Shown in pieces: positions 1-49,994 of a stretch of 63,843 bases of DNA; positions within the stretch are counted from its first letter, which is position 1; each line of letters begins with the position of its first letter. The stretch comes from Pocillopora damicornis (Eukaryota): the NCBI RefSeq assembly GCF_003704095.1, contig NW_020846678.1, forward strand, positions 186,158-250,000, read 5' to 3'. The notes beneath the pieces were generated by a model that had not been told where the DNA came from, searched no databases, and saw only the letters and a program-made list of their open reading frames with translations. The position numbers and the translations under genes were made by a program.

Positions 1-543
1 AAGCTTTAGACTTTATCACTCGAACAATATTTTGCAGATTCCTAAATCCCGCTACGTAGACTTGTCTCTTTGTGGAGGCTATCTGCATGAGCTGTCCAAT
101 GTTGTAGTTCTTTCCAATTCCAATGGCAAATACTTCTATTCCTGCGCGCTTTAGTGCCAGTGCACTTCCGCGCACGCGGTCATTGGATATTCCGTCAGTC
201 ATCACGATTAAAACTGGCTTGCTGTTTCTGCGCCTGCTATTAAACAGGTTACGCCGGGCAAATGACAAAGCGTAGCCCGTCCTGGTGATGCTTCGGAGGT
301 ATGGAATACGGTCAATAGCTTTCATGAGATATCTTTTGTTGTTGTATGTGTTAAAACCAAACACTTTACGAACCCTTCTTGAATAAACAACAGCTCCAAC
401 GCGAGTGTAACGCCTTGAGATTTTAAATGAAGCCACTAATCTCTTGATGAAATTAAGGCAACGTTTGAAGTTCCCTCTGCCCGAGGCTTCGATGCTTCCG
501 GAGGCGTCGATGACGAAACCTAAATCAATCTTGGCTACGCAAA
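1..543 (-). CDS. Exon V13: vWA domain, MIDAS intact (truncated by window edge)
   Basis: After the AG acceptor at 544-545 it reads CVAKIDLGFVIDASGSIE...GRGNF...RVGAVVYS...VMTDGISND...IEVFAIGIG. Confidence 0.88.
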
Positions 544-776
544 CTAAAGAGAAAAAAATGAATAAAGGGGGTTAGTTTCTAAAGCCACTGTAGTGGTGCG
601 TCGGTGGGAGAGTATAACAGGGTAATTTAGTATTATCAACTCAGTTGATAATGTAAATTGGCCATCGTGAAGTGTGGAAAGGCTGACGTTTCGAGCGTTA
701 GCCCTTCGTCCATCGTTCTGACGGTGGCCAATTTACACTATCAACTCAGTTGCTAACACTGAATTACCCTGTTATA

Positions 777-807
<31 letters not shown>

Positions 808-3800
808 AAGAAACTCACCCCCTTCATAAAGAGAGAAAAAACTGACTAAGAACCTGCAAGAATAAATCACGACTATTAAGAACGCATAAAACGCACTACA
901 CCTACGCAAGGTTGGTTATCAAAATGATAATAATCATAAATAATAATGATCGTTGAAATCTTAAGTTTTCGGATCCCTTATAAGGTAACACAATCGTCCT
1001 TAGAACACTTATCGGATACGAACTTTTTTTTTGAGTTGAAGACTTTAAGAGCTCGTTGTGTTTGAAAGTAGAGTACGTCAAAATGTCGAAATATTTATCA
1101 ATTTCGAAGAAGAAATTCTTTCTCATGGATACGATGGGTGAGACCTTGCTCAAACCAGCTCTTGCGAGGAAAGCAGTTAAGCATTGTAAGAAAACACGTG
1201 ATAAATACCTGGTCCAGCTGGACGAATGACCGGTGGAACGATGATAGGACCTGAAACGATAGCAATAAGATAAAAAAGTAAAGGTTTGTAAAAAGCCATC
1301 GATCCATATTAATTCCAGTGCACTCAGTGAATTCTACTAGAGCATTTAGTTCGTTTTACTTTGAATGTTGCGCTAAAGATCTACAGAAAGGGAAATGTTG
1401 GATCACTCTAAACAGCTCCGTGACCAGATCCATACATGGCAGTCACGAAATACATTTTCTCTATCGCGAACAAATAACTGCAACGACGTTAATCTTCCAA
1501 TTTATACATCAATCACTGCAATTTACCTCGAGTGAAGCATCTCTTTTTCCGACGTAAAATTTGTGATGCTGATAAGGGCTGATCATACACCTGCATGCAG
1601 GAAATACGACCGAAGAGGTAACGCCTATCACCAGCGCGAGCTCCCATCCGTACAGGATAGTTCGTGGCCAGTCTTATCTTTCCAATGCGCCTACTTGCAG
1701 TAAACCGCCTGTTCACAAATAGCTTAGCAACGCCAGTTGTGCCATCGTAAGTTGCACCAACAAACTGCCATCGACGATTTAGGACTCTGGTTGTAACCGC
1801 CGCTGTAAATCGCCTTCCTTTACGACGCGTAAACCGTACAAACAGCGTCGTCGGTGAAACCATCCAAAAGTGCACGCCCCAGCCGTTCGGCATGTAGTTG
1901 AATATTGGTCCTGCACGTCCTTCGTGGTAAATCCATGCCAGTAAAGTAATGGACCGCTTAGTGTCGAGTTTACCGCGGTTAGGGAACTCGATGAAGCTGT
2001 TTTGGTGTCCGAGGAATCGCGTCGCTGTGTTGGGTCTTCCGTCCGGGCCTGTTATGTACCTGACGCTTCGAACGCTTCCCGCGGGATTACGATACAAACT
2101 GAGGTCACGACCGCGCGTACGCAAACTGAGTGGGTACACAGCCTGAGCTCTCGGGTTGATAACTGAAAACGTAAACCAAAAGGGTAACAGGTGCCTCTTT
2201 CAGAAATCCTGATTTATGGAAAAATGCTTAAAATTGCTTAACGCACTAGATCGGTACAGAAAACAGCCAGTGTATTTCTGCATTTACGATGATAACAAAG
2301 TTTAAACTTAAATATATTTACAAAACCAAAGTAAACTACTGGAGAGTTAGCAACACCAATTTTTTTTTGTCGTATCATAATGTTTATTTGTAATATGTGA
2401 ATTCGTTAAGATGGAAACCATCGCTCATCGATCTTAAGTTGCTTTCGCTTAGGAGAATGTTATTATTTTTTTTACAAGGCTGCTGTGATTCTTTTCATTT
2501 AATATGAAGCTCATATGGAGCGCTTTCGTTGTGATTCCACCCGGTTAAATGAAGTGCCATTTTCCTCTGTAATATCTTTTAGTCTAAAGTGTTTAAGGGC
2601 AGAAAGACTAATGACAACATTTACTTCTGATATTCCCCACTTTTTATTTTTATCCTTGTTTTCCTTACCTGGACGAACTGGGGGCTTACGAGGACGTGTA
2701 GGGCGAACCGGTGTTGGTCGTGCGGGAAGTGGATGCACTCCTAAAATGCAATATACAAAATAGTTTGGTCACAAAAAAGGTCATTTTTAATTGACTGTCG
2801 GAAGTTATCCAGGGTTGTATTGGTTTTACTTCACCCTGCTATGTGATTAGTTTCGAGATAACGCATCACCTCCTCAGCCAGTGAGATTCAAACTAAAAGC
2901 AGCTGCGACAGAGGCCCTAAAGGTTGAGGTTGTTTTCGCAAACATACTTTCAGATCTCATTGACAGTAACCTTTTTTTTTTTTGGCGTTTTCAGTTACTG
3001 TGATTCTTGTTTGAACAATGAGTGGCAAAAGGATTTGGCAAGTCTCTAATTAGAAGGTGGTCGACAACCCTCCATTGAATATATAAAACAGAAATGGGAT
3101 AAGTTACTCGAAAGTTCCCCTCTCCCTCTCTGACAATGTTGTATTAAATTAGCTCTATGAGCGAGGCCCATCAATTTCCCTCCGAAAGCTCCCCGTGACG
3201 TGAAAATATCAANNNNNNNNNNNNNNNNNNNNNNNNNNNNNNNNNNNNNNNNNNNNNNNNNNNNNNNNNNNNNNNNNNNNNNNNNNNNNNNNNNNNNNNN
3301 NNNNNNNNNNNNNNNNNNNNNNNNNNNNNNNNNNNNNNNNNNNNNNNNNNNNNNNNNNNNNNNNNNNNNNAAACAACAGACAGTTACAAAGTGTCGCTTA
3401 CCTTTAAAGCATTTTGTCTTTCGCTTGATGATCTGCCACCTGGACAGAACCCGTCCATAAACTTGCATACAGGAGATTCTCCCACGGAAGTATCTGCTTC
3501 TTGCAGCTCCCATGATTGCAGGAATGTTAGTACCAAGACGAACTCTTCTGAGCCGCGTGCGAGAAACGAGTCTTCCATTCACATAAATCCTTGTTTCACC
3601 CGTTTTCTGTTCATAAGAGGCGGCTACAAAGTGCCATCTTCGGTATCGCAATACTCCGCGCGCCCTCAGTGGGCGAATTCGGCTGTTCCGTGATCCACGC
3701 GGGAAAATTCGTATAAACAAACTACGCGCTCTACCGACAGAGAAATCGACGCCGTATTTGAAGATCGGTCCAGGGCCCTCGGGGTAAAGCCAAGCAAGTA

Positions 3801-6800
3801 ACGTTATTGCCTTTTGTGCGTCTAAACGACCGCGATTTGGGAATCGGATCAAGCTGTTTCTCCGACCGTAAAACTGGTATGATGTACCGGGTTTTCCATC
3901 AGGTCCGACCGCAGGCCTCACAAAGCCAAGAATGCCAGGTGGGTTTCCGAAGAGACCAACGTCTTTTCCTTTGATTCGGTACTGAAGAGGATAAATTGCT
4001 AAAGCACGCGCAGGTCCTAAGGAACATGTAAAAAGACAACGGCTGATTGAAGTCAAATATCAACCCATCCCTACGTAGTAATATGCTAGATTCACTGACT
4101 TAGATTTTTAAAAACAGTGGTGATTCATTTTAAGAATTATTGAGCCTCAAACCTAATTCTATAAAGGAATGTGTGCCTGATTATCTTAATGCAAATCTGG
4201 CAAGGAACCGCAAACAAAAATGCTGCCAGTGAACGTATCACGTTTTCAGTTTTTTAAAATCTTGTAGAACAGACTCTCATAAATTGTGGTATGCTATTAC
4301 GCTTCTGGCACTGTGATGATCTATTTTAGATGATAATCGATTCAATTATTTGTTTATTCAATTATAACCTATCAATCAATTTAAAATTGACGGTAGCAAA
4401 ATAGGTGAGGTATCGCACAGCAGCAGGATGCACTGAAAACATAAGTTCATGAAAAAATTGTGACTTGTAAAACAGAGTCTTTGGAGACAAGCTATAGAGA
4501 CACTTACCGGGCTTCGGAGGTCGACGAGTTGGTGGACGTGTTGGAGGCCTGGGTATAACTGGTTTGACAGGTGTCACGAATTTATCTAAAGTTAATGTAA
4601 ACACGTTTTAAGCCGAACAAAGTTTAAGTTATATTTATATATTATCTAGACTCAAACAAGTCGCAATCTGTTATCCTTCATAGTTTGACAATTTTTTTTT
4701 CGAGGAACGGAATCGCATATCAAAACGACAAAATAAAATAGACGCCAGGAACAGATACCAAGATCGACAGAAGTAGACGGAAAAAGATGCATCCTAGCTC
4801 TACAAAATTAAACGCTACAACGCAGAACAGAATTCTTCATCACCGAAACTAAGGTGAAATAATAATAAGCCGTTGTTGGACTGATTGAAACCAACGAAAA
4901 AATGGGACGAGGAAGGTAAAAAATTAGGAAAAACTGCAAGGAGCTACCAACCTGACTTGCAGACCTTCTTTTTCATGAGTGTAACCAAGGACTCAATATT
5001 CCTATACGCTGCTGTATAGACATGTCGACGATCAGTAGCAATGTACTGCAGCTCCCTAAAGTTGTAACGCCTTCCTATGCCCATAGCAAATACTTCTACT
5101 CTTGACCTTTGAATCAAAGCTGTTGCACCCCGGATATCATCTCTGGACGGGCCAGTGCTCGTCAAAACCAGGACCTTTCTCCTTGAGGTCCGGCTTATGA
5201 TGTTCCTGTATGAGTACTGCAAGGCAGCCCCTGTATAACGAGCTCCGCATACACGTTTCATGTTTTTGATGACTCTGATGACGTAGGACTTTTTGGCGCT
5301 GAAATTGATTAAGAGTTTGGGAAACTTCGCGTACGTAATCAAGCTGATTCGTACTCGTTTAGCGGAGATACGCAGCTCGCTAATCAAACGAATCAGGAAG
5401 GTCTTCAGACGGAGGAAGTTAGCTTTGGTAAAGCGGTCGTTTTCCGTACAAGCGTCTATAACAAAGGTGAGGTCGATCTTGGGTTTACAAACTGAGAAAA
5501 AAGGGGAATAAAAAACACACATTATTACAAGAAATATTTTAAATTAGCTTTGAGCAATATACTATAGAATTATAACAATCGACTGAAAAAACTCTCCTCT
5601 TGACTCTGATGATGACGGACGATTAAACTACACGATCAATTGTAAATTATGATAACAGAGTTTCTTTAGTCCAATGGTTCACTTCTGTACACTTTGGTGT
5701 TAATTCTTCGATTTTATTAGTGAAACGGGCTATTTTACCAGATGTGTAAGATAAGAGCTAAACATTATTTATATCACGAAGGGGATTCTAGCAAGACGGT
5801 ATAAAAGAGTACCATCAGTGGCTGTCAAAAAGCAAGAATATATTAATTGTCTGACCTTTTCCGGATGGTCCTGGCGGTCCACCTGTGGGAGAAAAATAAA
5901 CATGATTTGGGAATCATGCAAGTTTTTCTATAATGATTTTATAACATTGAAAGGTATGGAATAAATTTGAGGTACACTTTTAACACGCATGGGAAAAAAC
6001 TTTGGGAAAGACTGCAACACAGACAGATAGATAGCCAGAGAAATTGAAAAACAACCAGATGGACAGATAGATAGAATGACCGACGGACGGACGGTACGGT
6101 CAGATGGAATGGTATATGGATTTGTTTACCTACGCCACATGAGGAGCTCTTAGAAGCTCGCTAACTAGCGAGTTTGCATCAAGATCATATTATCTTTTGG
6201 GAAGAAAGGGGTAAAATGTTTAAACAACCGTGCTGATTTGTCACTCTAGTTAGCATCTTTGGTTTAATTGTTTAATTTGGGACATTGTAAATAAATAAAG
6301 GTATAGAATAACTCAATGAAACGTGAATCGTCAAAGATCCCAGCTACTGGAATGAGTACCAGAGGACTACTTAAAAAAAGCCACCAAAAGAGTTGAACGC
6401 TGGACTATCTAGAAAAAATCTAACTGAGAAAGAGAATAGACGTTTAAAAATTTAGAACTCCAAATATCAACCTCAGCCATTCATTCGCGATGGCTTCAGC
6501 AAAGGCAAACATTAAACTCAGCCCACCAGACAGACAGACACACAAACAACCCGACAAAAAGGCCGACAAAGGCAGACAGTAAGGCAGATAAAGGCAGACA
6601 TACGGACTGAAAAAATAGATGCATAAACAATAGACTGACAAATGGAGAGACACACGGACAACTAGACAGTAAATACAAACACGGACAGACATAACGACAC
6701 ACACTGACAAGTAGGTGCACAAACAATAGCAGAAGGATACACACAGAGACAAAGAAACAAATTAAACAAACCAACAATTAAGCAACTTACGTCTAAAGCA

Positions 6801-9800
6801 GCGCTTCTTCCTGCGTGCAATCTGATTGGGGTTCAATGCCACATCAAAAACCATTACACAAGATATGCGCCCGCGGAAATACCGCCCATCTCCTATCCTG
6901 GCACCCATCCTCACAGGATAATTTGTCGCTAGACGAATTCGGCCCAATCTCCTTTGCGCTATTACTTTACTGTCTAAATACAACTTTGCATAGCCCGTAT
7001 AGTGGTCGTATGTGGCAGCAATGTACTGCCATGTGCGAGGTTTAATACGAGGACTAGCAAGAGCAGTCGTGGATTTTCTTCCTTGTCGACGCGTATAACG
7101 TACAAAAAGCGTTCGCGGTGACACCATCCACAAATGCACTCCCCAGCCGTTTGGCATGTAGTTGAAGATCGGGCCCGCACGTCCCTCGTGGTAGATCCAT
7201 GCGATGATTGTGCTTGATCGTCTCGTGTCCAATTTCCCTCTGTTTGGGAACTGTATGTAGCTGTCCCGGCGTCCAAAAAACTGGTATGAACCTCCAGGTA
7301 ATTTGTCAGGGCCTGGTGCTGATTGTACGTAGCCAAGCTTTCCTGGTGGGTTGCCGAAGACACTGATGTCACGACCTCTGGTACGCGAGGTTAGAGGGTA
7401 GAATGCTGAGGCTTTAAATGGTCCTTGAAGAAAGAAAAATGAGAACAAAACATTTATAACGCTCAGGTTCAATAAGTATCAGACTGAACAAAGTAACGAC
7501 TTCTTACAAGACGCGCAAAAGCAAAGCGACATTTACTCCGCACTTTTGGATGTTATTGTATCCTAGGCGACTCTTTGGAAGACGCAAATTCTAAAAGAAG
7601 AGTAAAAGGTTCGCTCCTCTGAACATTCTCAGGCCTTTTTCAATTGTTTGAAGATTGATTAGAGATTCGATAATCTAGTATTATCAACTGAGTTGATAAC
7701 GTAAATTGGCCACCATAAATAGTTTCGCAGCTGACATTTCGAGCGTTAGCCCCTCGTCAGAGCAATTGGAGGAATTGTGGGTTGTGTGTGTGTTTATATG
7801 CAAAAAATGGAGCTACGCTATTGGTAGGAATACAGTGACGAGAAAAAAAGAATAAACTAGTTAATTAATACGGGCTCGTTGATACCGTGGGGATTAAGAG
7901 TACCGATTTGAAAGATAAATTTTTGTTCTAGAGTTTTGCGGCATTCAAGGTTCGTGTCGGCTTCCTAGTCATGGACATGTCACTGTGTTTTGAACGATGA
8001 TTATGTTATATTGTATACATGTAACCCTTACCTTTAGGTTTTGTTGGTGTTGGTGTTGGTGTTGATATTGGATGTGTCGGCGTTGGTGGCTTGGGTTTGG
8101 TTATGGGAACTTGGAAAAGACATACACAAATGAGACTAGTTAACTAAATAATCAACTCTTAGGCAAAAGAGATATAGCGAAGACAAGTAAGCAGAGGAAA
8201 GCACAGGAAAACACCAGAGTTCAGATATGTTTTGTTTCCACGTTACTCTGCAGGCACATTGATCCTAAGACCACATTTTAGGAGTGTTATTACAGTCAAA
8301 TTGTGCTAAGATGTCTGAATTGATCCGTTTGTAATTGAAATGAGGTGCATTGCCCAGTGTGCTAATCTCTATTGGGAAATTTTCTTACGACCCCTTCAGA
8401 AATTTATACTTGTCTTCGAGTGCGAACATTAAGTCTAGGGAGACGAAAGACACCAAATTTTAGAAAATGGATGGGATATCGTACCCTGAAAAACATTGGT
8501 TTATAGTGCTCATATTTAGCATATACAACACATGCGATAAGAAAGGTTAAGGCAACTGACTTTTACAAATAAAGATTAATTACTTTTAGGATCACTTACA
8601 GGGCCTGAAGCAGGTTTTACTAGCCGCTAAAATTTGTTTCCGGTTCAGCGCGCGACTATAGATCTGCACGCAGAAGATTCTTCCCTTAAAGTAGCGTTTG
8701 TCGCCATGTCGTGCTCCAAGCCTGATTGGATAGTTTGTTGCCAATCGGAATCGTCCGATACTCTTAACAACAAGTAACCTGGAATTAACCCAGAGTTTAG
8801 CAACTCCAGTCTTGAAGTCGTATGTAGCACCAACGTAATTCCATGCCCTGTAACGTATTTTTCTGCTGGTGACGACTACCGCCTTAGTAAATACGCCATC
8901 TCTGCGGACGAACCGCGCAAAAAGCGTGCGTGGTCCAATCATCCACAGGTGCACGCCCCATCCGGGACCTGCCCTGTAGTTGACTATGGGACCTTTTAGA
9001 CCTTCGTGGTAAATCCACGTCAAAATGGAGATCGACGCCACCGTGTCGAGTTTTCCATTGTTATTTGGGATTTCAATGTAACTGTTACGGTTGCCAAGGA
9101 ATTCAGTAGCTCCGTCTTTCCTTCCGTCTGGGCCCGGGGCAATTCTTACGCCAACGCGTCTTCCAGTGGGGCATTTACGTGGGCTGATGTCACGAGCGCC
9201 ATTGATTCTATCCAGTGGATAAACAGCCACCAATAGAGGAAGTTCTATAGAAAAAAATGAAAAGATGCCAATGTTACTTCTACGGGAAGAAATTTACAAA
9301 TTTGGCCCAAAACTCTTAAAGAAATAATTCCCGCAGAAGATATTGCTTCTTATTTTTAACCGGAGTGTCTAAACTCCTCATCCAAAAACAAATAATGTTG
9401 ACAGCGAAGAAAATGATCAAAGAGGTTGAAAACAACATGGAGGGGGTTGGGATGGGACAAAACGACCGCATGGTGAAAGTAACGCGTCAGTTATCCCTGT
9501 ATTTTGTTGAGGTGTTAAGTTATTTTACTTCTAATAGCCATAGCTAAACCTTGCGGACAGCCTATGCTACCTTGATTTTATTCCTTGACATTTTTTTTTA
9601 AGACCATTACTTTCTTTAAGAATTTCAGACTTTTAAGAAGTCCTGCTCAGTGATAGGTGCAGTCAAGAAGGAATTGAAATATCTTTCTCTCACCTGGAGG
9701 TGGTCGAGTTGGTGTAGGTCGGGCTAAGATAAGTGAAAAAAAAAAGATAAAAATGTTATTGATGAAAATCAAAAACCAAATTCAAATTCAGTACTTTCAG

Positions 9801-39800: not shown

Positions 39801-42800
39801 TTTGATTTAATGGCGAGCTAATGTAAGCTATGAAACATAACTAAATTGCTGTGCAAGAAGTAGTTGGAAACTGCTCTTAAGGTACGATTCAGTTGAACGT
39901 ATCCATTCGTTTGGTACACAAGGTCGTTTCGTGGTTGCGCATCAAAAATGTACGTCACGTAAACAAAACTTATCTAACGCTGGTAATATTGTTTTTGAAC
40001 ATAAGAAAACCTACTTATTTAAAACATACCTGACATGGATAACACATTTTAGTAGAATGGGTACGAAACGAATCGACCGACCGGGTACAAAGGGTCCTAG
40101 CTGGGTATGAATCGACTTGGTACGAAACGACTCTTAGAAGAACAGATATTTTACAATTAATGAAAGTTTAGCCAGGCTTACGTTTGAAACATCTCCTTGC
40201 AGCATTTATGACTTGCTTTCGCGTAAGCGCCACGCTGTAAACCTGAACACAAGATACCCTGCCACGGAAGTACCGACGATCGCCAATTTTTGCACCCATA
40301 CGCACGGGTCGGTTTGTCGCCAGACGAATTTTCCCGATGTTAGACCGAACAACTGGTCGATTATTCACCCACAGTGTGGCCATTCCTGTGTTTCCATCGA
40401 AAGATGCACCAACGAAATTCCACGCTTTGTATCGCACGTTGTTGCCATGGGTTACGAGCGGTGTGGTGAAGCGACCACCCCGTCTGACAAACCGGGCAAA
40501 GAACTGTCGAGGTTTTGTCATCCATAGATGCACGCCCCAACCCGGACCACGATTAAAGTTAAAGATCGGACCAGCATAACCCAAGTGCAAGACCCAGGCC
40601 AACACTGTTATGGAATTCTTTGCGTCTAGCTTTCCAGTATTCGGGAACTCCACGTAGCTGTTTCGATTCCCAAAGAATTCGGTAGCTGTGTTCGGCCACC
40701 CGTCAGGACCTGGCCCTGTTCTCACACCAACAAAGGTACCAGTGGGGTTTCGGTTTCCGCTGACGTCACGTCCTTGGTATTGTTCGTCGAGGGGGTAGAT
40801 GGCAACAATGCGTGGGAGACCTGAGTTGAAGCCAGTGTAAAATAGTAAGTGGACGTACTGATTACAATTTTGCTACTTGGAGACAAATAAGGTCCATATT
40901 TCTGAGGGATAAGGCGATCAAAATCCGGCGCGCACACAGCTGACACTTGAAAACGATCGAAAAGCTGCAAGCACGATACTTAAACTGCGTAACTGAACTA
41001 GACACCGTAACAAACTAGGACATTTTCGTTTTTACATTTGGAGACAAAAATTGCAAATGGTGTATAATCACGTTCTACTGCGAACTACAATGTCCCACCC
41101 ATTTCAAAGGTACTGATTACAATGACACATTTTCCCCTAGAGCGGAGGCACCAAGTTCAAACCCCAAAACCACCAAGTTCAAACTCCCCAGGCTGTTTCT
41201 TTCAAACTTAGAAAACGTAAATATGTAGAAATTATTCGGAACATTTTTTTAACGTACCTGGCGTTGGTTTCGGTGTCACAGGTCCTAAAAAAGAAATGGA
41301 CAATTGTTTAAGGTACAAGATTTTTAAGTAAGTCAGCAGAAGTATGCATGCAAACGGCCCCGACGAAGCGCTGAGTTCTAAATCGGTGTCTTAAGTATCT
41401 ATCTACTTCACACCATTTGAACTGTGTGCAGCAAACTTGGTTGAAAATGTATTCACCGAATATCAGTTGAAGATACGAAAAATGTACCAGAAAAAATTTT
41501 CAGTGCGGATCGAAACAGGCGTAGTGAATTATAAGTTTCCTGCCACTTGTTAAATGATTTGTACTTTTTTGAAGGACTTCACGACGCGAATCGTTTATAC
41601 TAGTGATGTCAGATAAAATATACCAACTTACTTGCGCGGAAGCAAAATCTCTTGAGCCTCCTTATCTGATAAGAGTTAAGTGCAAGATTGTAAATATGAA
41701 GACACGAGATGCGACCTCTGAAATGTCTAGGGTCACCGGGCTTTCGTCCTGAAATAGCTGGGTAATTTGTGGCCAGTCGAATCCTCCCGATATTTCGTTG
41801 AGTGATTGGAATAGCATCCAACCACAAGGTTGCCAAGCCAGTTTTCTGATCGTAAGTAGCAGCAATGTAGTTCCACACTCGGGAACGTATTCTCCTAGAG
41901 ATCTTGAACGATTTTCTCCGGTTGCGAGTCACAAACTCCGCACGGATTACCCTTCGGCTAATCATACGGAGATTGACACCGATACCCCTGGGATAGTAAT
42001 GGAATATCGGTCCAGCACTTTCTGGGTAGAGCCACAGAAGGATGGTGATTGAGTTATGTGTATCCAACCGTCCGGTATTTGGGAAGTAAATAAAGCTGTT
42101 GGCAAATCCTTGCAGTTGGTAAGAACCAGCGGGAAGCCCATCAGGTCCGTTCTTAGAAACGACATTGACAAGTCTTGCAGGCGGGTTTTTAAAGGGGCCT
42201 TTGTCTTTTCCACGTTCTATGCCATTTAATGGGTATACGCCCATAGCCGGGGGTGGCTCTGTTGGAATGAAAACAAACGTAATCGGATTATTAAGCCAAT
42301 AGTATAAATTAAAAGTAATAATGAGTGTGATATTTTTCACAAATCCCATTAGTTTGCCTCTGTCAATGACAATGCCACGTAAAAATCATAATATTAACAA
42401 AGAGGGAATATAGACTCAGTGTGTAAATAGCTGGCTTACCACAGTAAGAAAGATAGAAAACATGGGCAACCTCCCCCCCCATCTGCCAATTACAAGACGT
42501 ACAAACACTGGTCTATTAGGACTAAGTTCCAACTCAAGTAGTGAATTGTTGGAGATATGTAGTTACCAGAGGGAAACTGTCACATAATAACATTTTCTTA
42601 CCAATCTTTGGTGATGGTTTTTTTGTCACATATGGGCCAGGCTCTGCAATCAAAGAAAACATGAAACGTCAGTACAACATTAAATTCTATTGAAACATGA
42701 TGTAGCTACAACGTTACAAACTTCATTCCTCTCTTTCTCTTCTGAAGAGATGCACATTAAAAGAACTGGATTTTTGAGGCTATTCATCGTCTTAGATCAT

Positions 42801-45800
42801 CAATAAAACGAATTCCAAATTTGCAGGTTGTGTAAAATTTTTAGCGGTTGAGAACTTGCACGTTTGCGCCAATATATAAAAGTCTTCAAAGGTTAAAGAT
42901 CTGTATAAATGTGATTCTTAGTTGCCGTTCGTAATATGAATTACATCGAGGATTGTTGAATTTTTTACTTACTCCTTGTTGGTGTCGGTTTTGGAGTAGC
43001 TGCACATATCTTTGCCACAAGTTTTGGCAGGTTGGTTGTAATTCTCAATCTTACACCAGTGAACACGTGGTGACGGTCATTCGCTATGGTAGACAAAGAG
43101 GTCATGCTGGTCCTGCCACCCATTCCAACCGCGAATATCTCGACCCCAGCTTGCCTGAGCATCTCGGCAGGCCGCGCAACACCATCGGAGGATCTACTAC
43201 CAGTGACAACTACAAGGACTCTGGCTCGAGAAGACGACCGTGACCCAGTATACAAATATCTCTTAGCAAAGCGCAACGCGCGTCCTGTATACGATCGTCC
43301 GCGAGGAAAGCCGATCTTTTTCACTGCCTTTAACAAATCGTATTTGCGCGAGAAGGTACGGAAATTAGATACCGGAATTGGAGTGTTTGAATACGCAATA
43401 ATACCGACACGAGTATAGATCCTAGAAATGTCAAAATATCTGATGATCAATCGTGCGAGGTAAAGGACTTGGCTGAATCTATACCGACTGCCACTGCCGT
43501 CAAGTAGGATACCAAGATCAATACGAGATCTGCAAGCTAAATGAAGATTTTAAAGTATAAAAATTAATTCATTTTATAATCACAACATGATACTTTTTCC
43601 ATAACAAGGGTCACCATTTTCCGATTAAAGCCAATTCTAAATTTATTGCACATTTTCAGGATACAAAAAGCTTTACATAAATATAAATTGTTTAATTTAA
43701 GTATAAAGAGAAGTTGGACGGTTTAAAAAACTCTTAGATTTAAATAGGAGCATAACGGGTTTAAAAGCTACAACTTACTTTTTCCCCGAAGGGGTGGTGC
43801 CGGTGTTGGTGGTGCAGGAGTGGGGAAAGCTGAAAAATGCAATAATACGAAAAGAAGGAACAGTTATGTCAATCAAATTTGCCTCTAAATTAAATAACAA
43901 ACAACAAAAAGGAACACGTTAACCAAATGAAAACAAAGGGGGCTCCCCCCTTTACACCCTTACATCAGTATCAATTTTCTCCACACTATTCTCTGTACAT
44001 TTTCCATGGTATTGAAATGGAGAATTTGTTTAGAAGTCGAGAACTTCTCTTGTTGATACTCTAACGACCTTAACGTGTGATTCGGGAGGTAAATTTAAAG
44101 AATAATTTATATGCTAAACGCTTTTTGGGGTCAAAGAGTTAAAAGAATTATACTCACCTTTAAAGCAAAGTTTCTTGGCGATCCTGATGAGTCGTAATGA
44201 GAGAGCTACATCATAAACCTGCATACACGTTATCCAACCACGAAAATTGCGATTATCTCGTATTTTTGCACCCATCCTAGCAGGATAGTTTGTCGATAAA
44301 CGTATTCGACCAATAGCCTTAGTAGCGACTCTTTTGTCGTTGACATACAATGCTGCAACACCTGTGTTCTGATCGTACGTGCAACCAACAAAACTCCAGG
44401 ATCTGCGCCTAAGGATTCGACTGATCAGCGGCGGTGTCATAGCTCGCGTGCGCCGCACGAAACGTGCAAATAGTCTTCCTGCGCGTGTAACCCAAAAATG
44501 GACGCCAAACCCCCTGGGATCGTAGTTGAAGATAGGTCCCGCACCCCCATGGGGGTTGATCCATGCTAAGAGAGTGATGGAGTTCTGGGTGTCAAGTGGT
44601 CCCGTGTTGGGGAACTCAATAAAACTGTTAGGCTTTCCTGAAAAACTGTACGAGCCACCACGTCGTCCATCGGGGCCGGGCGCTGGTTTAACGTTGAATA
44701 ATTTTCCCGGCGGATTCCTCTTGGGACCAACGTCATAACCTCTGTAACTCACCGTCAAGGGGTAGAAGGCAACAGCATCCGGGAGTCCTATTAAGGGAGG
44801 CCAGGTTTATATGTCATGTTGGCGTAGTGACGTGTAAACTAATATTATTAGATAAACACCAATGGAATAAAGAGTGAGCTTTCGCGCGAAACATGACATC
44901 TTCACACGTGAAGATAACATGTTATTTTATCACGTGAAGATAAGATGTTATCTTAACACGTCAAAAGATCAATGTTGCTCTGGTTACAGCGCATGGTTCT
45001 ACTTCAAAAAAAAAAAAAGCGAAATGAGTTAGTATTTCATTGATGTTTATATCATAAATAGAATATTACAAGGCCGCTTATAGATTTTCCTTCTCGCGTT
45101 AAAAAATAATTCACTCGTTCGTTTTGCGCATTCGTGAAATATTTTTTATCACTCGAGGAGAAATTTCGTATCTCCGTACGGCCAGGTAATATCATCTATG
45201 TAAGAGGTTATTGTACTGGTGTCGTGGCTTTTTAAAGCTTTAGAAGTTGTATGCGCGTTATGAGAAGAGGTTTGCGATGTAATAGATGAAATATATTCCA
45301 TCTAACCACTTACTTTGAGGTGGCTTGGGCCTCTGTGTTGGACCTAAGAATGACAATAAATTTCAAATATCAGTGTTACGTCAATTTTGCCCAGCTAACC
45401 TGTAGAGCAGGCGTAATTTTGGCGAGCGAGTGCTTAGTATTTTCCAAGCGAAAATTATGGCCGCCATCTTTGATTTTAACAGCAGCGGAAGGCTGGGGAG
45501 AACAAGAACATTTTACCGAGGGGTGGGAGTGAGGGAGTGAATATTTTCGACCTTCTTTCTCCCCCTACCCCCACCGTCCACTCTGACTCCAAATCAAACA
45601 TGGCCGCTCGGATACACTATTGGGAGCTTTTAACGTTAACTCGCCTTACTAAGACAACTGCACTGCAGGCTACTGCCTCGCCTAAAAGAGGAGCCCTAGT
45701 TGGCTTCTTTTTGCCACCCATCATTCTCTTCGAAATATTTCCAAAGGTACGTGGCTCTGCGCGTGGTAGCGCCGCTATGATATAAATAAATGCAATAAGA

Positions 45801-48800
45801 ATTGTTACTCACGTGCTCGGAAGCAAACCCTTTCAGCTCTTTTTATTTCAGGACCAGACAAGGGTACACTGTACACTTGCATACAAGAGATCCTTCCACG
45901 GAAGTACCGCAAGTCACGCGGCAATGCACCCATTCTTACGGGTCGATTGGTAGCTAGACGAATGCGACCAATGAACAGAGACTTAACAGGTTGAGAGTCT
46001 CGCCATAGCGTTGCAATTCCTGTCCTTTCGTCATACGACGCTCCAACGTAATTCCACCTTCCAGGTCTCAATGTGCGACTGATCAACTGCCGGGTTGGTC
46101 TCCCTGTGCGGCGGACAAATCGCACGAACAGAGTATTCGGTCTGACGACCCAGAAGCGAACTCCTCCCGGAGAAAAATGAAATATTGGTCCAGAACCTTC
46201 AGGGTATACCCAGGCGAGGAGAGTCAGGGAGTATCTAGAATCGAGTTTTCCCTTGTTGGGGAAATCTATATAACTGGTTTTTCTTCCGTAGAAATAGTAG
46301 GAACCATCAGGCAGCCCATCAGGGCCAGGTGCGGGACGTACGTTGTGTAACTTTCCCTCGGGGTTCTGGCTAGAGCTGATGTCTTTACCTCTTGTTTTTC
46401 TACTGAGTGGGTAAAACGCAACGATACGGGGGAACCCTGAAAATTTGAAACAAATTCGATAAATAAAAACATACAATCGTAGCATAATTATTAAAATGAA
46501 CAGTTTATTTTTGTTACATGGTATACATCATGAAGAGGCCCTTGTGCCGTAAATTTCATAGTTACTATATTAAAGATTCTCGTGTGCTATAAGGAGCAAG
46601 ACATTTCCGGACTTGAAAGAACTGGGTAATGTCGAAAGGAATGCATTTAAAATTTCAGTGCGTTTGCAAGCTGTAAACCTTACGAATTAAATTCTTTGAT
46701 TAGTAATGGGAATGAATGCAGTTCCTGACTTATAGGTACAAGATTTGTTTAAAGATTTTTATAAACTATGGGCGACAAATTTATGTGAAAACAACTTAAC
46801 TAACACTTAATTATATAGCGTTTGTAGATCGCGTCCCTTGGTTTAGATACCGTTACATAATGTATTTTCCCGCGCATCTCATTTAAACCTTTAACAATGA
46901 GTTTCCATTACCAGAAAAACTACACTTACGTGTTCTTTTAGTTGGCTTTGTAGTCGGTTCTGAAAGCAAAAGAAAGATGGTACGAGAACGGGTCACTTTA
47001 ACACAAAACTACACTTTCACCATACACATGACTAACTCGTCGCTTTTCTGCATTTTCTTGTGTTTTGAGTCCAGTCCACTTTAATTTCAAAAACCAATAT
47101 TGCGGTATGCCTCAACATTATTTTTGTGAATGGGCTTAAAATCGAGCGGCCCAGCCTCTGTTTTCAAACGGTTTTAAAAAAATCATAACGAGTAAACAGA
47201 ACCACGATTACTATCATAAGGCGTCCGTGAGGATTCAGAGTAAAAAACGAACAAACTTCCTGCGGCGCAGGAAAATCTGTGATCGAGCGACGAGTGACGA
47301 GTGTGCATCTGTTGGTCGACAGAGTGCCTGGATTTTCTATACCAATCACGGAGTGGTAAACCAAAGATTGAAAAAGCCCGGATTACTTGCGGCACTCGAA
47401 ATTTTAAATATTAAAGTTACCACTTACTTATTGGGGGTCTGGTGATGGGACAGAGGCAGACACGATGCTTCGCTGGTAAAAGATTTCCACCAGTGCCTGA
47501 AAATAAATAAGACGAATTGGATTGCTTGCGTGAACTAAAACTAAAAGTCACTTCACCTATCGCATGTTTAAACAAGGTTGATAACTTGGAGTATGTCAAG
47601 CCACAGCGGTTGTCATTTTTTGGGATAAGCAGCGAGGTGGACTAGGAATGAGGTGAGAGAAACGACATAATAAAGTAAACTTTTTCGTGGTCAGATTTTT
47701 GGTTAAAATGGCTGCTTCTTACATAAATCGCCCGATACAGTAATATATTAAAGTACACCTTTTCTATGTTCAGATTTTTCGCTTAAATGGCTGCTTCTCA
47801 CAAAAATCACCGATACACCCACATAACCTCGAGTAAGTGCTATGGAAATTAATATCAATTTTAGATCATTTCATTGCCCATTTTTTGTATTTAAAGGATT
47901 TTCATATCCTGTGTGAAATTGTAGATATTCACAGTCATAGATCCAAGTCCGTAAACACTTAGGAGAGGGAATTGAAGTACCAAGGATTCGAAATAATAAA
48001 GTTACGCACCTAAGCAAATTGCGTTCCTGAGTTCGTTAACTACGATTCCCAAATGAGTCCAGTCCGCAGTAAAGATGTGATTCCTTCGAGGAGGAGAAGC
48101 CATAATGTCTAACTGACGACCATTAATGTACCGTCCCACCCCTAGACAATAAATCCTTACACCACGGGCCTTTAAAGCGTTTGAAGGTCCTGCAACGTCA
48201 TCCATCGAACTTCCATCGGTTATGACCACTACTACCTTAGTGGTCCTTGAACGTCTGGTGTTCTTACGGAACATCTGGTTTTGCGCCATCAATAAAGCCC
48301 TACCAATACGACTCCCTGATTTGGGGTAATGGACCCCCTTGTTAAGCCTGTTGAAGATAGCGCCGTTGTTTGTGTAGCTGTTAAAGCCGAAAAGCTTATA
48401 CGGCTTGGTACCAAACACGATGGCTCCCACGCGCGTGTTTGTTCGGGAGACTGAAAAACCGAGGACAACATTACGGACGAAGTCGATCAACCGTCGGAAG
48501 TTTCCGATGCCATAACGTTCCACGCTTGCTGAGCCGTCGATCAAAAATGCAAGATCTATGGCAGTTCTGCATGCTGTTGGAACAGAAAAAAGAGCAATAA
48601 AATTGTTTGATGCATATTGGCAGAGAAAATGTAATGATAAACTAGGGCTTATCCATCTACCGTTTTCAAATAAAATGTGACCACTTCTAATTAATAATTT
48701 GTTGAACTTCAATTTCGTTGCCAACAAGGAACAAAGTTTGGGTCTTTGAGGGATATATATTTTTTAGTAATTAAATCTTAAAATAATTTAAGGGATCTTG

Positions 48801-48975
48801 CCCAGGTATGGAAAAATATGTGGATACAAATAATATTAGTAAGAACAAGTGATATAAACCAGGCTGAACTTTACAATGAGTTACATTTGGGAGAGGAGGG
48901 AAGGGGGAGTCGTCAGCTAAGATATAACAATGATAAAATTTTACTTACTCATTGGCGCTGTTGGCTTTAAGGTTG
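1..48975 (-). CDS. Giant multi-exon, highly basic vWA / LamG-like repeat protein (>=13 vWA + >=18 LamG-like domains, ~6,600 aa in window; 3' end outside window, 5' end uncertain)
   Basis: Successive minus-strand ORFs fall into two recurring domain types bounded by canonical AG/GT sites. All complete module exons are multiples of 3 and phase 1-1, so they splice into one frame. Order 5'->3': V L L V L L V L V L V L V L V L L V L [gap] V V L L V L L L V L L V. Extracellular location is inferred from the domain types and paired Cys. Confidence 0.9.
565..824. mobile_element. Fold-back element with ~100-bp inverted arms, derived from Penelope-like termini; damaged hammerhead core in the spacer
   Basis: 565-668 is the near-perfect reverse complement of 721-824. 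The spacer contains CTGACGTTTCGAGCGTTAGCCCTTCGTC, shared with 7731-7760. Confidence 0.8.
1209..48975 (-). CDS. Set of 30 Pro/Thr/Lys/Arg-rich linker micro-exons of the giant gene
   Basis: Each is AG/GT bounded, phase 1-1 and a multiple of 3 (except the gap-truncated one): 1209-1250, 2669-2740, 4508-4585, 5856-5882, 8032-8109, 9694-9723, 11949-12008, 13057-13089, 14404-14463, 15460-15483, 17866-17922, (21938)-21965 truncated by gap, 23059-23103, 24690-24719, 25031-25057, 26539-26568, 28296-28316, 30054-30083, 32191-32241, 33425-33442, 34707-34754, 37097-37147, 38204-38233, 39744-39773, 41258-41284, 42602-42643, 43779-43829, 45314-45343, 46930-46959, 48949-48975. Confidence 0.8.
1527..2162 (-). 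CDS. Exon L18: LamG-like (ConA-fold) domain
   Basis: YPL...GPDG...FPNRGKLDT..SITLLAWI...WQFVGATYDG.TG..LFVN...LATNYPVRMG...GRISCMQVY...CF; 636 nt, AG/GT bounded. Confidence 0.88.
2785..2900. repeat. Interspersed repeat; degenerate inverse copy at ~27860-28015
   Basis: TGTGATTAG...CTCAGCCAGTGAGATTCAAACTAAAA resembles the reverse complement of TTTTAGCTTTGCATGTCGCTGATTGAG...CCAATCACA. Confidence 0.45.
3402..4016 (-). CDS. Exon L17: LamG-like domain
   Basis: Same motif set (ORF 3046..4056); 615 nt, AG/GT bounded. Confidence 0.88.
4952..5491 (-). CDS. Exon V12: vWA domain, MIDAS degenerate (DACTE)
   Basis: CKPKIDLTFVIDACTE...RISLITYA...YTGAAL...VEVFAMGIG...EL..IATD...VC; 540 nt. Confidence 0.88.
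6527..6780. repeat. Degenerate (GACA)n microsatellite; related tracts at 6019-6110, 31050-31125, 59380-59545
   Basis: 4-nt periodic GACA/GATA/CAAA/TCAA units. Confidence 0.75.
6791..7423 (-). CDS. Exon L16: LamG-like domain
   Basis: ORF 6762..7472 motifs; 633 nt, AG/GT bounded. Confidence 0.88.
7670..7942 (-). mobile_element. 3' fragment of a Penelope-like retroelement (GIY-YIG C-terminus + 3' region)
   Basis: Minus strand 7858-7942 translates CRKTLEQKFIFQIGTLNPHGINE..., the typical end of a PLE GIY-YIG domain. It is followed by a hammerhead motif and the arm sequence seen at 625-668. Confidence 0.78.
7728..7763 (-). ncRNA. Minimal type I hammerhead ribozyme motif
   Basis: GCU-CUGACGA-GGGGCUAACGCUC-GAAA-U-GUC-AGC: CUGANGA and GAAA core boxes, short stem II, GUC site; PLE context. 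Confidence 0.6.
8600..9244 (-). CDS. Exon L15: LamG-like domain
   Basis: ORF 8592..9233 motifs; 645 nt. Confidence 0.88.
9821..10453 (-). CDS. Exon L14: LamG-like domain, extra-Cys subtype (NKGCLDT)
   Basis: ORF 9807..10358 extended to the acceptor at 10454-10455; 633 nt. Confidence 0.88.
10797..11348 (-). CDS. Exon V11: vWA domain, extra-Cys subtype (RQCGRKR), MIDAS distal Asp lost
   Basis: ACRANMDLGFLIDSSYS...RVGVVTYA...VLVVFASARSVD...IEVFVVAIG; 552 nt. Confidence 0.88.
12264..12896 (-). CDS. Exon L13: LamG-like domain
   Basis: ORF 12235..12924 motifs; 633 nt. Confidence 0.88.
13399..14001 (-). CDS. Exon L12: LamG-like domain
   Basis: ORF 13388..14164 motifs; 603 nt. Confidence 0.88.
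14585..15118 (-). CDS. Exon V10: vWA domain, MIDAS degenerate (DASGR; MSGPS)
   Basis: ACNLAIDIGFVLDASGRVG...RVGVIVYG...IEVFAVGV; 534 nt. Confidence 0.88.
15851..16010. repeat. 20-bp minisatellite, ~8 degenerate copies
   Basis: Unit ~TTGCCCCTRTAGGCATGTTA repeated head-to-tail. Confidence 0.9.
16077..16348 (-). CDS. Exon V9b: C-terminal half of vWA domain V9
   Basis: YLFPRG...VLVILTDGISQDNV...VEIFSLGIG...KAC; joins V9a through a phase-2 intron (292+272=564 nt). Confidence 0.85.
16410..16710. mobile_element. ~300-bp non-autonomous element with an internal tRNA-like (SINE) cassette, copy 1
   Basis: Strongly similar to 61600-61885. The minus strand has A-box TAGTCCAGTGG and B-box GGTTCTAGTCC; sub-terminal inverted match AGCGGTGCTTGC / GCGAGCTCCGCT. 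Confidence 0.8.
17440..17731 (-). CDS. Exon V9a: N-terminal half of vWA domain V9, MIDAS intact
   Basis: CRLKVDLGFLVDGSGSIE..GKGNF...RVGMVVFS...YPYGGTKLGRAL. Confidence 0.85.
18785..20608 (+). other. Gap-interrupted plus-strand fragments of the same gene family: vWA start (18785-18832), two vWA ends (19215-19402, 20028-20216), two LamG starts (19876-19927, 20538-20608); probably mis-oriented contigs
   Basis: CTARVDLGFLIDATS; RVKRPAEALKGAGVEIF...LKDRICYSPG|gtaag twice; ag|VIRRGAVAVYQLNSASK twice; separated by N-runs. Confidence 0.8.
19535..19567 (-). repeat. Degenerate third copy of the PLE hammerhead/terminal repeat
   Basis: CTGACGA-AGACCTGACGCTC-GAAA-GGTC on the minus strand; flanks resemble the 565-824 arms. 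Confidence 0.5.
22123..22764 (-). CDS. Exon L11: LamG-like domain
   Basis: ORF 22088..22786 motifs; 642 nt. Confidence 0.88.
23487..23628. mobile_element. MITE-like element (~140 bp)
   Basis: Terminal inverted repeats GGCCCAGTTGTTCAAA...TTTGAACAGCCCGGCC with an internal imperfect palindrome. Confidence 0.65.
23803..24366 (-). CDS. Exon V8: vWA domain, MIDAS intact
   Basis: CKIAVDLGFLVDGSGSIE...GGTRIG...ITDGISQD; 564 nt. Confidence 0.9.
25666..26301 (-). CDS. Exon L10: LamG-like domain
   Basis: ORF 25634..26320 motifs; 636 nt. Confidence 0.88.
27085..27714 (-). CDS. Exon L9: LamG-like domain
   Basis: PPRAVALYPLN...GPD...YIYFPNNGGIDT...WNYIAATYD...LATNYP...GRIACMQVF...CF; 630 nt. Confidence 0.86.
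28812..29149 (-). CDS. Exon V7b: C-terminal part of vWA domain V7
   Basis: YLPRGRGSFIGRAL...LLILSDGVSSD...VELFALGIG...KVC; phase-2 junction with V7a (232+338=570 nt). Confidence 0.85.
29310..29541 (-). CDS. Exon V7a: N-terminal part of vWA domain V7 (DGSSS)
   Basis: CRSRVDLGILVDGSSSVG..NF...RVGVMLFS...AINRIR|gt. Confidence 0.85.
30205..30873 (-). CDS. Exon L8: LamG-like domain, extra-Cys subtype (NNGCLDT)
   Basis: 669 nt, same length as L6; AG/GT bounded. Confidence 0.88.
31187..31735 (-). CDS. Exon V6: vWA domain, extra-Cys subtype (PTCGRRR), MIDAS degenerate (DGSRR)
   Basis: CKARIDLGFLIDGSRR...IEVYTVGLG...IKDRMCHSP; 549 nt. Confidence 0.88.
32586..33221 (-). CDS. Exon L7: LamG-like domain
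   Basis: ORF 32554..33240 motifs; 636 nt. Confidence 0.88.
33666..34235 (-). CDS. Exon V5: vWA domain, MIDAS intact
   Basis: CAVPIDLGFLIDGSSSIE..GRGNF...GGTYIG...LTDGISQD; 570 nt. Confidence 0.9.
35256..35924 (-). CDS. Exon L6: LamG-like domain, extra-Cys subtype (NNGCLDT)
   Basis: ORF 35164..35766 extended to the acceptor; 669 nt. Confidence 0.88.
36434..36976 (-). CDS. Exon V4: vWA domain, extra-Cys subtype (PRCGRRR), MIDAS degenerate (DASRV)
   Basis: CRQRIDLGFLVDASRV...VELYAVGIG...IKDKIC; 543 nt. Confidence 0.88.
37366..38001 (-). CDS. Exon L5: LamG-like domain (alternative in-frame acceptor at 37989)
   Basis: ORF 37355..38068 motifs; 636 nt. Confidence 0.87.
38481..39047 (-). CDS. Exon V3: vWA domain, MIDAS intact
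   Basis: CRTVVDLGFLIDGSGSIE..GRGNF...GKTYIG...LTDGISQD; 567 nt. Confidence 0.9.
40182..40820 (-). CDS. Exon L4: LamG-like domain
   Basis: ORF 40168..40725 extended to the acceptor; 639 nt. Confidence 0.88.
41632..42258 (-). CDS. Exon L3: LamG-like domain
   Basis: ORF 41609..42349 motifs; 627 nt. Confidence 0.88.
42973..43536 (-). CDS. Exon V2: vWA domain (DGSGS present, distal Asp lost: VTGSRS)
   Basis: CRSRIDLGILLDGSGS...RVGIIAYS...YTGRAL...VEIFAVGMG...KIC; 564 nt. Confidence 0.88.
44158..44787 (-). CDS. Exon L2: LamG-like domain
   Basis: ORF 44114..44758 motifs; 630 nt. Confidence 0.88.
44846..45200. repeat. Interspersed repeat with internal tandem CACGTGAAGATAACATGTTAT units and imperfect inverted segments
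   Basis: Three ~26-bp related units at ~44900-44970; TAAACACCAATGGAATA pairs with TATTTCATTGATGTTTA. Confidence 0.5.
45395..45671. mobile_element. Putative non-autonomous TIR element
   Basis: Ends TAACCTGTAGAGCAG...CTGCACTGCAGGCTA are imperfect inverted repeats; GC-richer than the host intron. Confidence 0.5.
45813..46436 (-). CDS. Exon L1: LamG-like domain
   Basis: ORF 45805..46485 motifs; 624 nt. Confidence 0.88.
47428..47496 (-). CDS. 69-nt CLC linker exon (GTGGNLLPAKHRVCLCPITRPPI)
   Basis: tttcag|...|gtaagt, phase 1-1; homologous to exon 57366-57434. Confidence 0.8.
   Translation of the reverse strand, partial: ALVEIFYQRSIVSASVPSPDPQ
48010..48573 (-). CDS. Exon V1: first vWA domain (DGSAS...ITDG)
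   Basis: CRTAIDLAFLIDGSASVE..GIGNF...RVGAIVFG...VITDGSSMDDV...AIC; 564 nt. Confidence 0.9.
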
Positions 48976-49914: not shown

Positions 49915-49988
49915 CTTGAATACTGAGATAAATTTGGGTCGAAACAAAACGGTTGATCGTATCGTCGATAAACTTAGGAACATTGTTG

Positions 49989-49994
49989 TTTATA
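49989..49994 (-). promoter_or_regulatory. Candidate TATA box of the giant gene
   Basis: TATAAA on the minus strand ~75 nt upstream of the tentative ATG; motif only. Confidence 0.25.

Follow-up and report, generated by a model that had tools for sequence, protein, structure and literature searches.

Large secreted proteins underlie the formation of coral matrix, mucus and skeleton, and few of them have been characterised. The described systems that come closest to the locus reported here are collagen VI alpha-3, the mussel protein PTMP1, SVEP1/polydom and the mollusc shell matrix proteins Pif and BMSP. The locus is a minus-strand array of VWA and Laminin_G_3 (LamG_3) exons at positions 1-48975 of a 63,843-nt stretch of Pocillopora damicornis DNA (contig NW_020846678.1, 186,158 to 250,000), hereafter the window. 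These positions are probably the 5' two-thirds of one very large gene with a product of more than 10,000 residues, which would rank among the largest proteins predicted in cnidarians.

Genes with tandem VWA, collagen VI for example, typically have one phase-1 exon per module. Collagen VI alpha-3 (PDB 9han_C) is also the top solved sequence match to the coral VWA module (285 bits summed), and in both proteins tandem VWA modules are each bounded by Cys near both ends. However, a Gly-X-Y triple helix is lacking in the coral gene, its Pfam-scanned open reading frames (ORFs) show neither Kunitz nor FN3 domains, and its array is about three times longer, with interleaved LamG_3 and strongly basic modules throughout. 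Mussel PTMP1 (PDB 4cn8), an extracellular VWA protein of a load-bearing secreted material, is the second-best solved match to the coral VWA (E 1.9e-34), but it consists of two VWA in 454 residues and contains neither LamG_3 nor WSC. SVEP1/polydom, a giant extracellular adhesion protein, likewise joins VWA to a jelly roll of the pentraxin/LamG type, and automatic annotation could well give its name to the coral gene. It has one VWA and one pentraxin domain compared with dozens in coral, and sushi (CCP), EGF and HYR domains are absent from the coral array, whose ORFs show Pfam VWA and LamG_3 only. Pif and BMSP belong to a secreted biomineral matrix and carry VWA and laminin-G-type domains with basic and acidic regions (PMC11291548). 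Compared by architecture, they differ from the coral array in carrying chitin-binding domains and in having many fewer modules, with VWA numbering one to four.

The nearest named relatives of the LamG modules are uncharacterised mosaic proteins of amphioxus, the acorn worm Ptychodera, Lingula, Nematostella and Hydra (31-46% identity; e.g. XP_078610005.1, XP_032240504.2 and XP_065639357.1). Amphioxus XP_078610005.1 also has a VWA domain, and WSC is found in the Hydra protein and in amphioxus XP_019624450.1. These mosaics combine two to five LamG_3 with lectin, CUB, PAN, WSC or polycystin parts, and none of them has the alternating mega-array of the coral. Comparable VWA/LamG exon arrays (58-68% identity) are present in two other assemblies, and a Tara Pacific coral metagenome scaffold contains an ORF whose sequence is the same as that of one module. 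In the protein collections searched, coral sequences are present only as single-exon ORF calls, and the locus illustrates how giant genes are hidden by short-read assemblies and ORF-level gene calls. A literature search on Laminin_G_3 with VWA, coral, cnidaria, SVEP1 and giant proteins returned mollusc shell proteins and a huge-protein survey only, and not this architecture. Altogether, we found no characterised protein or paper with a VWA/LamG_3 mega-array in protein searches, made exon by exon, or in the literature, as had been supposed in an earlier note on this DNA made from the sequence alone.

Domain array and exon structure

In the window (G+C 40%, 10 runs of N), minus-strand stop-to-stop ORFs of about 190-260 aa occur at one per 1-2 kb from 1 to 48763. 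Pfam detected VWA (PF00092) in 16 of the 37 ORFs, with a top score of 139.9 bits (E 1.3e-40; gathering cut-off 23.8 bits), and Laminin_G_3 (PF13385) in 18 (top E 1.9e-18). These are the two families that the earlier note had expected; matches to pentraxin (PF00354) were weak and limited to two ORFs. Positions 1-48975 contain 31 modules, 13 VWA and 18 Laminin_G_3, on the minus strand throughout, and modules correspond to exons about 1:1 across the array, nearly without exception (Table 1). Just ahead of each conserved domain start lies a polypyrimidine tract with an AG acceptor, after which 2 nt of a split codon remain in the exon, and just past the conserved C-terminal Cys a GT(A/G)AG donor leaves 1 nt. 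Inter-module introns are therefore all phase 1, and exon lengths are multiples of 3. Two VWA modules are divided by an extra phase-2 intron (29541-29310 + 29149-28812; 17731-17440 + 16348-16077). The 43 complete module exons, spread over 77 kb, contain no stop codon, and all are phase 1-1 with lengths divisible by 3. Domain exons within 1-48975 total 18,660 nt (6,220 aa), or ~19.3 kb once linker micro-exons are added, in good agreement with the ~19.9 kb of exons estimated earlier.

A collagen reading was rejected, in line with the earlier note, which saw no collagen, because of the lack of any run of at least five Gly-X-Y triplets in all minus-strand frames of the window. No Pfam domain was found in 21 small Cys-containing ORFs of the introns.

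Two interruptions of the assembly fall inside the array. The gap at 3213-3370 is intronic, between exons 4016-3402 and 2162-1527, so that no reading frame spans it, and a 337-aa ORF reading through it is an artefact. The cluster of nine gaps at 18609-21937 is located between exons 22764-22123 and 17731-17440, and phase 1 on both flanks makes the frame compatible across it. The only coding piece in this cluster is the C-terminal half of a VWA on the plus strand (~20028-20212), either a misoriented scaffold piece or a genuine inversion. The suggestion that the gene probably continues through the gaps is compatible with the frame of the cluster's flanks, and the wrong-strand piece in the cluster speaks against it.

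RNA support and linker micro-exons

Part of 42900-52899 is contained in 21 public runs, nine of which are recorded as RNA. RNA contigs were placed on 42960-48959 (6 kb) from four runs of three studies, comprising two random-primed coral metatranscriptomes, one polyA metatranscriptome and one probable RNA run; this evidence consists of assembled contigs, not reads. The locus is expressed in polyA RNA. Spliced joints, CT..AC on the plus strand (GT..AG on the minus), fall exactly at the predicted ends 48010, 45813, 44787 and 43536. In all, eight predicted exon ends were confirmed by RNA contigs, and the first four modules are joined via Pro/Thr-rich micro-exons of 27-69 nt. Small exons were revealed by RNA joints at 47496-47428 (69 nt), 46959-46930 (30 nt), 45343-45314 (30 nt) and 43829-43779 (51 nt). 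Loose ends of RNA contigs at 48949-48978, 43813-43829 and 42629-42643 link 48573 to 48949, 44158 to 43829 and 42973 to 42643, and point to the additional micro-exons 48975-48949 and 42643-42602. The RNA-supported micro-exons are all phase 1-1 and code for Pro/Thr/Lys-rich linkers. Moreover, the alignment of a 1,959-nt RNA contig ends exactly at donor 42973 and the contig continues for 1,218 nt, so that at least two further modules are reached; RNA continuity ranges from 48975 to ~40300. The proposal that the separate-looking ORFs are exons of a multi-domain gene, for which spliced RNA over the predicted junctions had been named as a check, is borne out by the uniform phase 1-1 structure and by the joints over the first four modules.

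A scan for phase 1-1 Pro-rich micro-exons recovered all six of the RNA-supported ones and predicted one in most of the remaining introns, a few VWA-to-LamG junctions being without a predicted linker. At two of these junctions (36434-35924 and 31187-30873), where no linker is predicted, the VWA has three Cys and the LamG three to four, compared with the usual two each. In all four RNA runs, contig depth over the intronic region 45360-45760 is far above that of the exons and many contigs have loose ends there; the region is a dispersed expressed repeat and not part of the gene.

With such a structure, any exon can be skipped without a frame shift, and micro-exon linkers are typical cassette exons. 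It could thus be hypothesised that one locus makes many shorter isoforms through cassette use of its symmetric exons, the full 10,000-aa chain being produced rarely or never. However, joints in the 6 kb covered by RNA are all between neighbouring exons, with no skipping joint listed. Because contigs drop rare variants, this absence is weak evidence, and we consider such cassette use quite unlikely.

Extent and ends of the gene

The 60 kb beyond the left edge of the window were scanned with hidden Markov models (HMMs) built from window modules; window position 1 is contig position 186158, and contig positions are used for this part. The array extends 28.5 kb to the left of the window, to contig ~157,650, with nine more LamG and eleven more VWA modules and identical phase 1-1 sites, so the gene does run past the left edge, as had been claimed. 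Three WSC modules (PF01822) are found on the same strand in the array's 3' third, left of the window, two of them with scores of 28.7 and 31.5 bits, above the cut-off of 27.8, and the third just below it at 24.2. A composition of VWA and LamG only, put forward in the earlier note, is therefore correct for positions 1-48975 and incorrect for the array, given these three WSC; a WSC-like candidate exon also lies upstream at window 52303-52061. The array is followed by a divergent Laminin_G_3 in two phase 1-1 exons (contig 157485-156403), and a good donor just ahead of its stop leaves the 3' end open. On the plus strand at contig 142137-150145, a many-exon gene of TSP1 repeats (WSxWSxCSxTCG) is oriented towards the giant gene's 3' end.

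For the whole array, the total is 24 VWA, 27 LamG_3 and 3 WSC, and the coding sequence of ~31 kb would specify more than 10,000 aa, in a gene of roughly 80 kb with ~50 one-domain exons. The size of >6,600 aa (~6,600) given earlier is thus replaced by a probable >10,000 aa. It appears fairly likely that all modules are carried in one mRNA. Alternatively, the array might consist of at least two adjacent genes of the same family, divided for instance by the gap cluster or around the left edge of the window, with products of a few thousand residues each. RNA continuity only from 48975 to ~40300, the assembly breaks at 18609-21937 and at a 320-N gap left of the window, the younger, more uniform subfamily formed by the LamG modules left of ~7400, and shorter arrays of the family elsewhere in the genome are all consistent with this alternative. 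However, a search of the array found no internal exon that combines a signal-like start with a usable phase-1 donor, no module exon is terminated by a stop, and both gaps are flanked by phase 1 throughout, which makes a division into several genes unlikely.

Other points weigh against a single giant gene. The RNA check covers only ~6 kb, and the same runs contain unspliced contigs (e.g. 46996-47547). The joint 46930 to 46436, from micro-exon 46959-46930 to the next LamG_3 exon, is not among the listed rows. The assembly is broken within the array by the gap cluster, with the wrong-strand VWA piece inside it, and no long coral gene model for comparison was found in the collections searched. For the start codon and signal peptide there are only candidates, the two signal-like first exons predicted at 54265 and 53696.

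At the 5' side, micro-exon 48975-48949 has a good acceptor, and its sole ATG would yield a product without a signal peptide. The gene start therefore most likely lies upstream of 48975, and not at that position. The polyA contig runs 3 nt (CAG) past this micro-exon as a loose end, which is compatible with donor 53561, 53004 or 49547, or with read-through. Candidate upstream exons are given in Table 1. The acidic one (50859-50485) has no paralogue in the genome, so that a synteny comparison with other arrays is impossible. WSC is found near a LamG module at several further loci in the genome, and both are present in one protein in the Hydra and amphioxus relatives; this co-occurrence mildly favours the view that the WSC-like exon 52303-52061 would be part of the gene. 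When the initial 54 residues of the first VWA exon were used in a protein search aimed at RNA-contig ORFs showing an upstream exon, no match was found.

Charge, metal site, divergence and fold of the modules

Net charge is +18 to +37 and the isoelectric point 10.8-12.0 in all 43 complete single-exon modules, so that the whole chain would carry a net charge above +1,000. LamG relatives of more than ~43% identity are equally cationic, other assemblies included, and many of those at 30-40% are neutral or acidic; about half of the single-module LamG relatives at 30-40% identity for which charge was computed are not cationic. VWA modules have a Cys at the start and at the end. Their metal ion-dependent adhesion site (MIDAS, DxSxS..T..D) is retained in 11 of the 17 complete single-exon modules and lost or degenerate in six (43536, 36976, 31735, 15118, 11348 and 5491). 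LamG modules retain a Cys in the last strand and another in the C-terminal helix.

Pairwise identity is 36-88% among LamG modules and 25-61% among VWA modules. The LamG-LamG-VWA-LamG block at 46436-41632 resembles the block at 14001-9821, with 55-61% identity for their three LamG modules, so the array grew by old block duplications. Since the modules are diverged and yet all open, selection is indicated; a pseudogene array was rejected, with zero stops in 43 diverged exons.

The AlphaFold2 model of LamG module 37366-38001 (predicted local distance difference test score, pLDDT, 97.4) is a 15-strand jelly roll with a C-terminal helix, ConA-like in fold. Its best match (VIA-align) is carbohydrate-binding domain 4 of the AbnA arabinanase (Z 22.0, root-mean-square deviation 2.5, 189 residues), and the lectin-like N-terminal subdomain of clostridial neurotoxin binding regions and NTNH is matched at Z 19-21. 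Further matches are PTX3 (Z 17.8), the sialic-acid-binding CBM40 (~17), short pentraxins and collagen IX NC4 (~15), the heparin-binding TSP-1 N-domain (14.2) and laminin LG (13.5). All denote kinship at the level of fold, at 10-19% identity. A toxin reading of the neurotoxin match was rejected, as the match is to a generic lectin-like jelly-roll subdomain at 10-19% identity, and many carbohydrate-binding modules match equally well. Membership in the pentraxins was also rejected, as the signature HxCx(S/T)Wx(S/T) is missing and the aligned strand, S-I-T-L-L-A-W, has no His or Cys.

A fold related to pentraxins and to sialic-acid- and carbohydrate-binding modules might suggest that the product is not a structural matrix polymer but a humoral protein of the pentraxin/lectin type, for pattern recognition or agglutination, whose cationic lectin-like modules would attach to microbes and clump them in mucus. 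In its relatives, the LamG module accompanies C-type lectin, F5/8C, SUEL, PA14 and WSC domains, and the modules are highly positive; high positive charge is common in antimicrobial proteins. The missing pentraxin signature and the matrix type of the VWA modules argue against such a humoral lectin, which we regard as improbable.

Proposed function

With restrained confidence, we lean towards one very large gene that encodes a secreted, polycationic, multivalent VWA/LamG_3/WSC cross-linker. The product would be secreted and extended, and probably O-glycosylated. The two-thirds of VWA modules that retain the MIDAS may bind matrix proteins, and the cationic lectin-like LamG_3 modules, together with WSC, may bind polyanionic glycans or acidic matrix proteins, with sulfated glycosaminoglycans, mucus or acid-rich skeletal matrix as possible partners. 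Symmetric phase 1-1 exons would permit variation in length via exon skipping. More speculatively, and with doubt on our side, the protein might represent an undescribed class of conserved anthozoan VWA/LamG_3/WSC polycations, of >10,000 aa and >+1,000 charge, that condense or template coral polyanions and whose length is tuned by symmetric-exon skipping. If the polycation reading is true, its targets could be, for example, acid-rich skeletal matrix proteins, sulfated mucus or the polyanion-filled matrix of cnidocysts. The uniform, extreme positive charge over adhesion and lectin-type modules is an unusual and testable property. From the exon map, with its RNA-confirmed junctions and linkers, peptides and probes can be chosen directly as targets in skeleton, mucus and cnidocyst proteomes and in cell atlases.

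Feature coordinates

Table 1. Exons, candidate exons and the gap cluster in window coordinates, in the direction of the gene; X1, X2, X3 and X5 are RNA runs
Position	Strand	Feature	Evidence or remark
54133-54265	-	candidate first exon MLSSSLLRAILFLLVASHVPA..., phase-1 donor TAG/gtaagt	ATG 54265, signal-like; prediction only
53561-53696	-	candidate first exon, ATG 53696, hydrophobic start, phase-1 donor ending CAG	only 3 nt (CAG) match X5 loose end
52821-53090	-	candidate upstream exon, Pro-rich, phase 1-1	
52061-52303	-	candidate upstream exon, WSC-like, phase 1-1	25.0 bits vs cut-off 27.8; gene membership putative
50485-50859	-	candidate upstream exon, acidic, Pro/Thr-rich, phase 1-1	unique in genome; gene membership putative
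48949-48975	-	linker micro-exon TLKPTAPM, 27 nt	polyA run X5 connects donor 48949 to 48573; acceptor predicted
48010-48573	-	VWA exon, first in array, MIDAS DGSAS..TDG	Pfam, splice ends; RNA joint or loose end at either end
47428-47496	-	linker exon with CLC motif, 69 nt	RNA joints at both ends, X1
46930-46959	-	linker micro-exon PTTKPTKRT, 30 nt	RNA joint at acceptor 46959; donor predicted
45813-46436	-	LamG_3 exon	Pfam, splice ends; donor 45813 RNA-confirmed in X1, X3
45314-45343	-	linker micro-exon PTQRPKPPQ, 30 nt	RNA joints at both ends, X1, X3
44158-44787	-	LamG_3 exon	Pfam, splice ends; acceptor 44787, donor 44158 RNA-confirmed
43779-43829	-	linker micro-exon FPTPAPPTPAPPLRGK, 51 nt	RNA joint to 43536 in X1, X2; X3 loose end from 44158
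42973-43536	-	VWA exon, MIDAS Asp lost (TGS)	Pfam, splice ends; RNA confirms both ends
42602-42643	-	linker micro-exon PGPYVTKKPSPKI, 42 nt	X3 loose end at acceptor 42643; donor predicted
41632-42258	-	LamG_3 exon	Pfam, splice ends
41258-41284	-	linker micro-exon PVTPKPTP	prediction only
40182-40820	-	LamG_3 exon	Pfam, splice ends
39744-39773	-	linker micro-exon QPPPTPPPP	prediction only
38481-39047	-	VWA exon, intact MIDAS	Pfam, splice ends
38204-38233	-	linker micro-exon GPIKPTPTR	prediction only
37366-38001	-	LamG_3 exon, used for fold model	Pfam, splice ends
36434-36976	-	VWA exon, degenerate MIDAS	Pfam, splice ends
35256-35924	-	LamG_3 exon carrying basic insert	Pfam, splice ends
34707-34754	-	linker micro-exon VVPTAPTQKPSTPRP	prediction only
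33666-34235	-	VWA exon, intact MIDAS	Pfam, splice ends
33425-33442	-	linker micro-exon PTPPR	prediction only
32586-33221	-	LamG_3 exon	Pfam, splice ends
31187-31735	-	VWA exon, degenerate MIDAS	Pfam, splice ends
30205-30873	-	LamG_3 exon carrying basic insert	Pfam, splice ends
30054-30083	-	linker micro-exon PQPPATPSP	prediction only
29310-29541	-	VWA N-terminal half exon, phase-2 donor	module HMM, splice ends
28812-29149	-	VWA C-terminal half exon	Pfam, module HMM, splice ends
28296-28316	-	linker micro-exon TVPTPT	prediction only
27085-27714	-	LamG_3 exon	Pfam, splice ends
26539-26568	-	linker micro-exon APPPEPPLP	prediction only
25666-26301	-	LamG_3 exon	Pfam, splice ends
25031-25057	-	linker micro-exon PISKPTPS	prediction only
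24690-24719	-	linker micro-exon TSPTRPLPE	prediction only
23803-24366	-	VWA exon, intact MIDAS	Pfam, splice ends
23059-23103	-	linker micro-exon PIVRPVTKPTGTPR	prediction only
22123-22764	-	LamG_3 exon, final one ahead of gap cluster	Pfam, splice ends
18609-21937	no strand	nine-gap assembly cluster, unfilled	
17440-17731	-	VWA N-terminal half exon, phase-2 donor	Pfam, module HMM, splice ends
16077-16348	-	VWA C-terminal half exon	Pfam, module HMM, splice ends
15460-15483	-	linker micro-exon KKPMTPP	prediction only
14585-15118	-	VWA exon, degenerate MIDAS	Pfam, splice ends
14404-14463	-	linker micro-exon, Pro/Thr/Ser-rich, 60 nt	prediction only
13399-14001	-	LamG_3 exon	Pfam, splice ends
13057-13089	-	linker micro-exon PPTKPIKPPT	prediction only
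12264-12896	-	LamG_3 exon	Pfam, splice ends
11949-12008	-	linker micro-exon (TP)n, 60 nt	prediction only
10797-11348	-	VWA exon, MIDAS Asp lost	Pfam, splice ends
9821-10453	-	LamG_3 exon	Pfam, splice ends
9694-9723	-	linker micro-exon RPTPTRPPP	prediction only
8600-9244	-	LamG_3 exon	Pfam, splice ends
6791-7423	-	LamG_3 exon	Pfam, splice ends
5856-5882	-	linker micro-exon GPPGPSGK	prediction only
4952-5491	-	VWA exon, degenerate MIDAS	Pfam, splice ends
4508-4585	-	linker exon, Pro/Arg/Thr-rich, 78 nt	prediction only
3402-4016	-	LamG_3 exon, gap 3213-3370 in next intron	Pfam, splice ends
2669-2740	-	linker exon, Pro/Arg-rich, alternative donor 2690	prediction only
1527-2162	-	LamG_3 exon	Pfam, splice ends
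1-543	-	VWA exon, 3' end lost in 320-N gap directly left of window	Pfam, module HMM, splice ends

Neighbouring sequences and related arrays

A separate VWA unit is located on the minus strand at 57366-59893, with a signal-like start at 59893 (MLTYLHLAILLLF...) and its VWA in three exons (~59242-59047, 58583-58413 and ...-57950). Next comes a 69-nt exon, 57434-57366 (...KQCLCNKGRKKP), which is a paralogue of the CLC linker exon 47496-47428. This unit could be a neighbouring gene or the far 5' part of the giant gene. On the plus strand at 62318-63025, a LamG_3 module of the same family is spread over two ORFs with three stops in the match, and is probably a pseudogene or a diverged, intron-split copy.

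The genome as a whole contains at least 88 copies of the LamG module. Outside this contig, a tight LamG_3-only array of ~10 modules of the cationic family lies on the plus strand of contig C3436 (243339-254705), with no VWA listed between them, and smaller LamG_3 groups occur on contigs C4207, C4289, C1535, C4228 and C55. When the window's WSC-like exon was used as a query, more than 25 WSC-like exons were found densely packed on contig C2706 (20583-65339, minus strand). Within the window, 556-827 is a palindromic intronic repeat of ~270 nt that matches itself on both strands, has dozens of genomic copies at 72-93% identity and looks like a miniature inverted-repeat transposable element (MITE).

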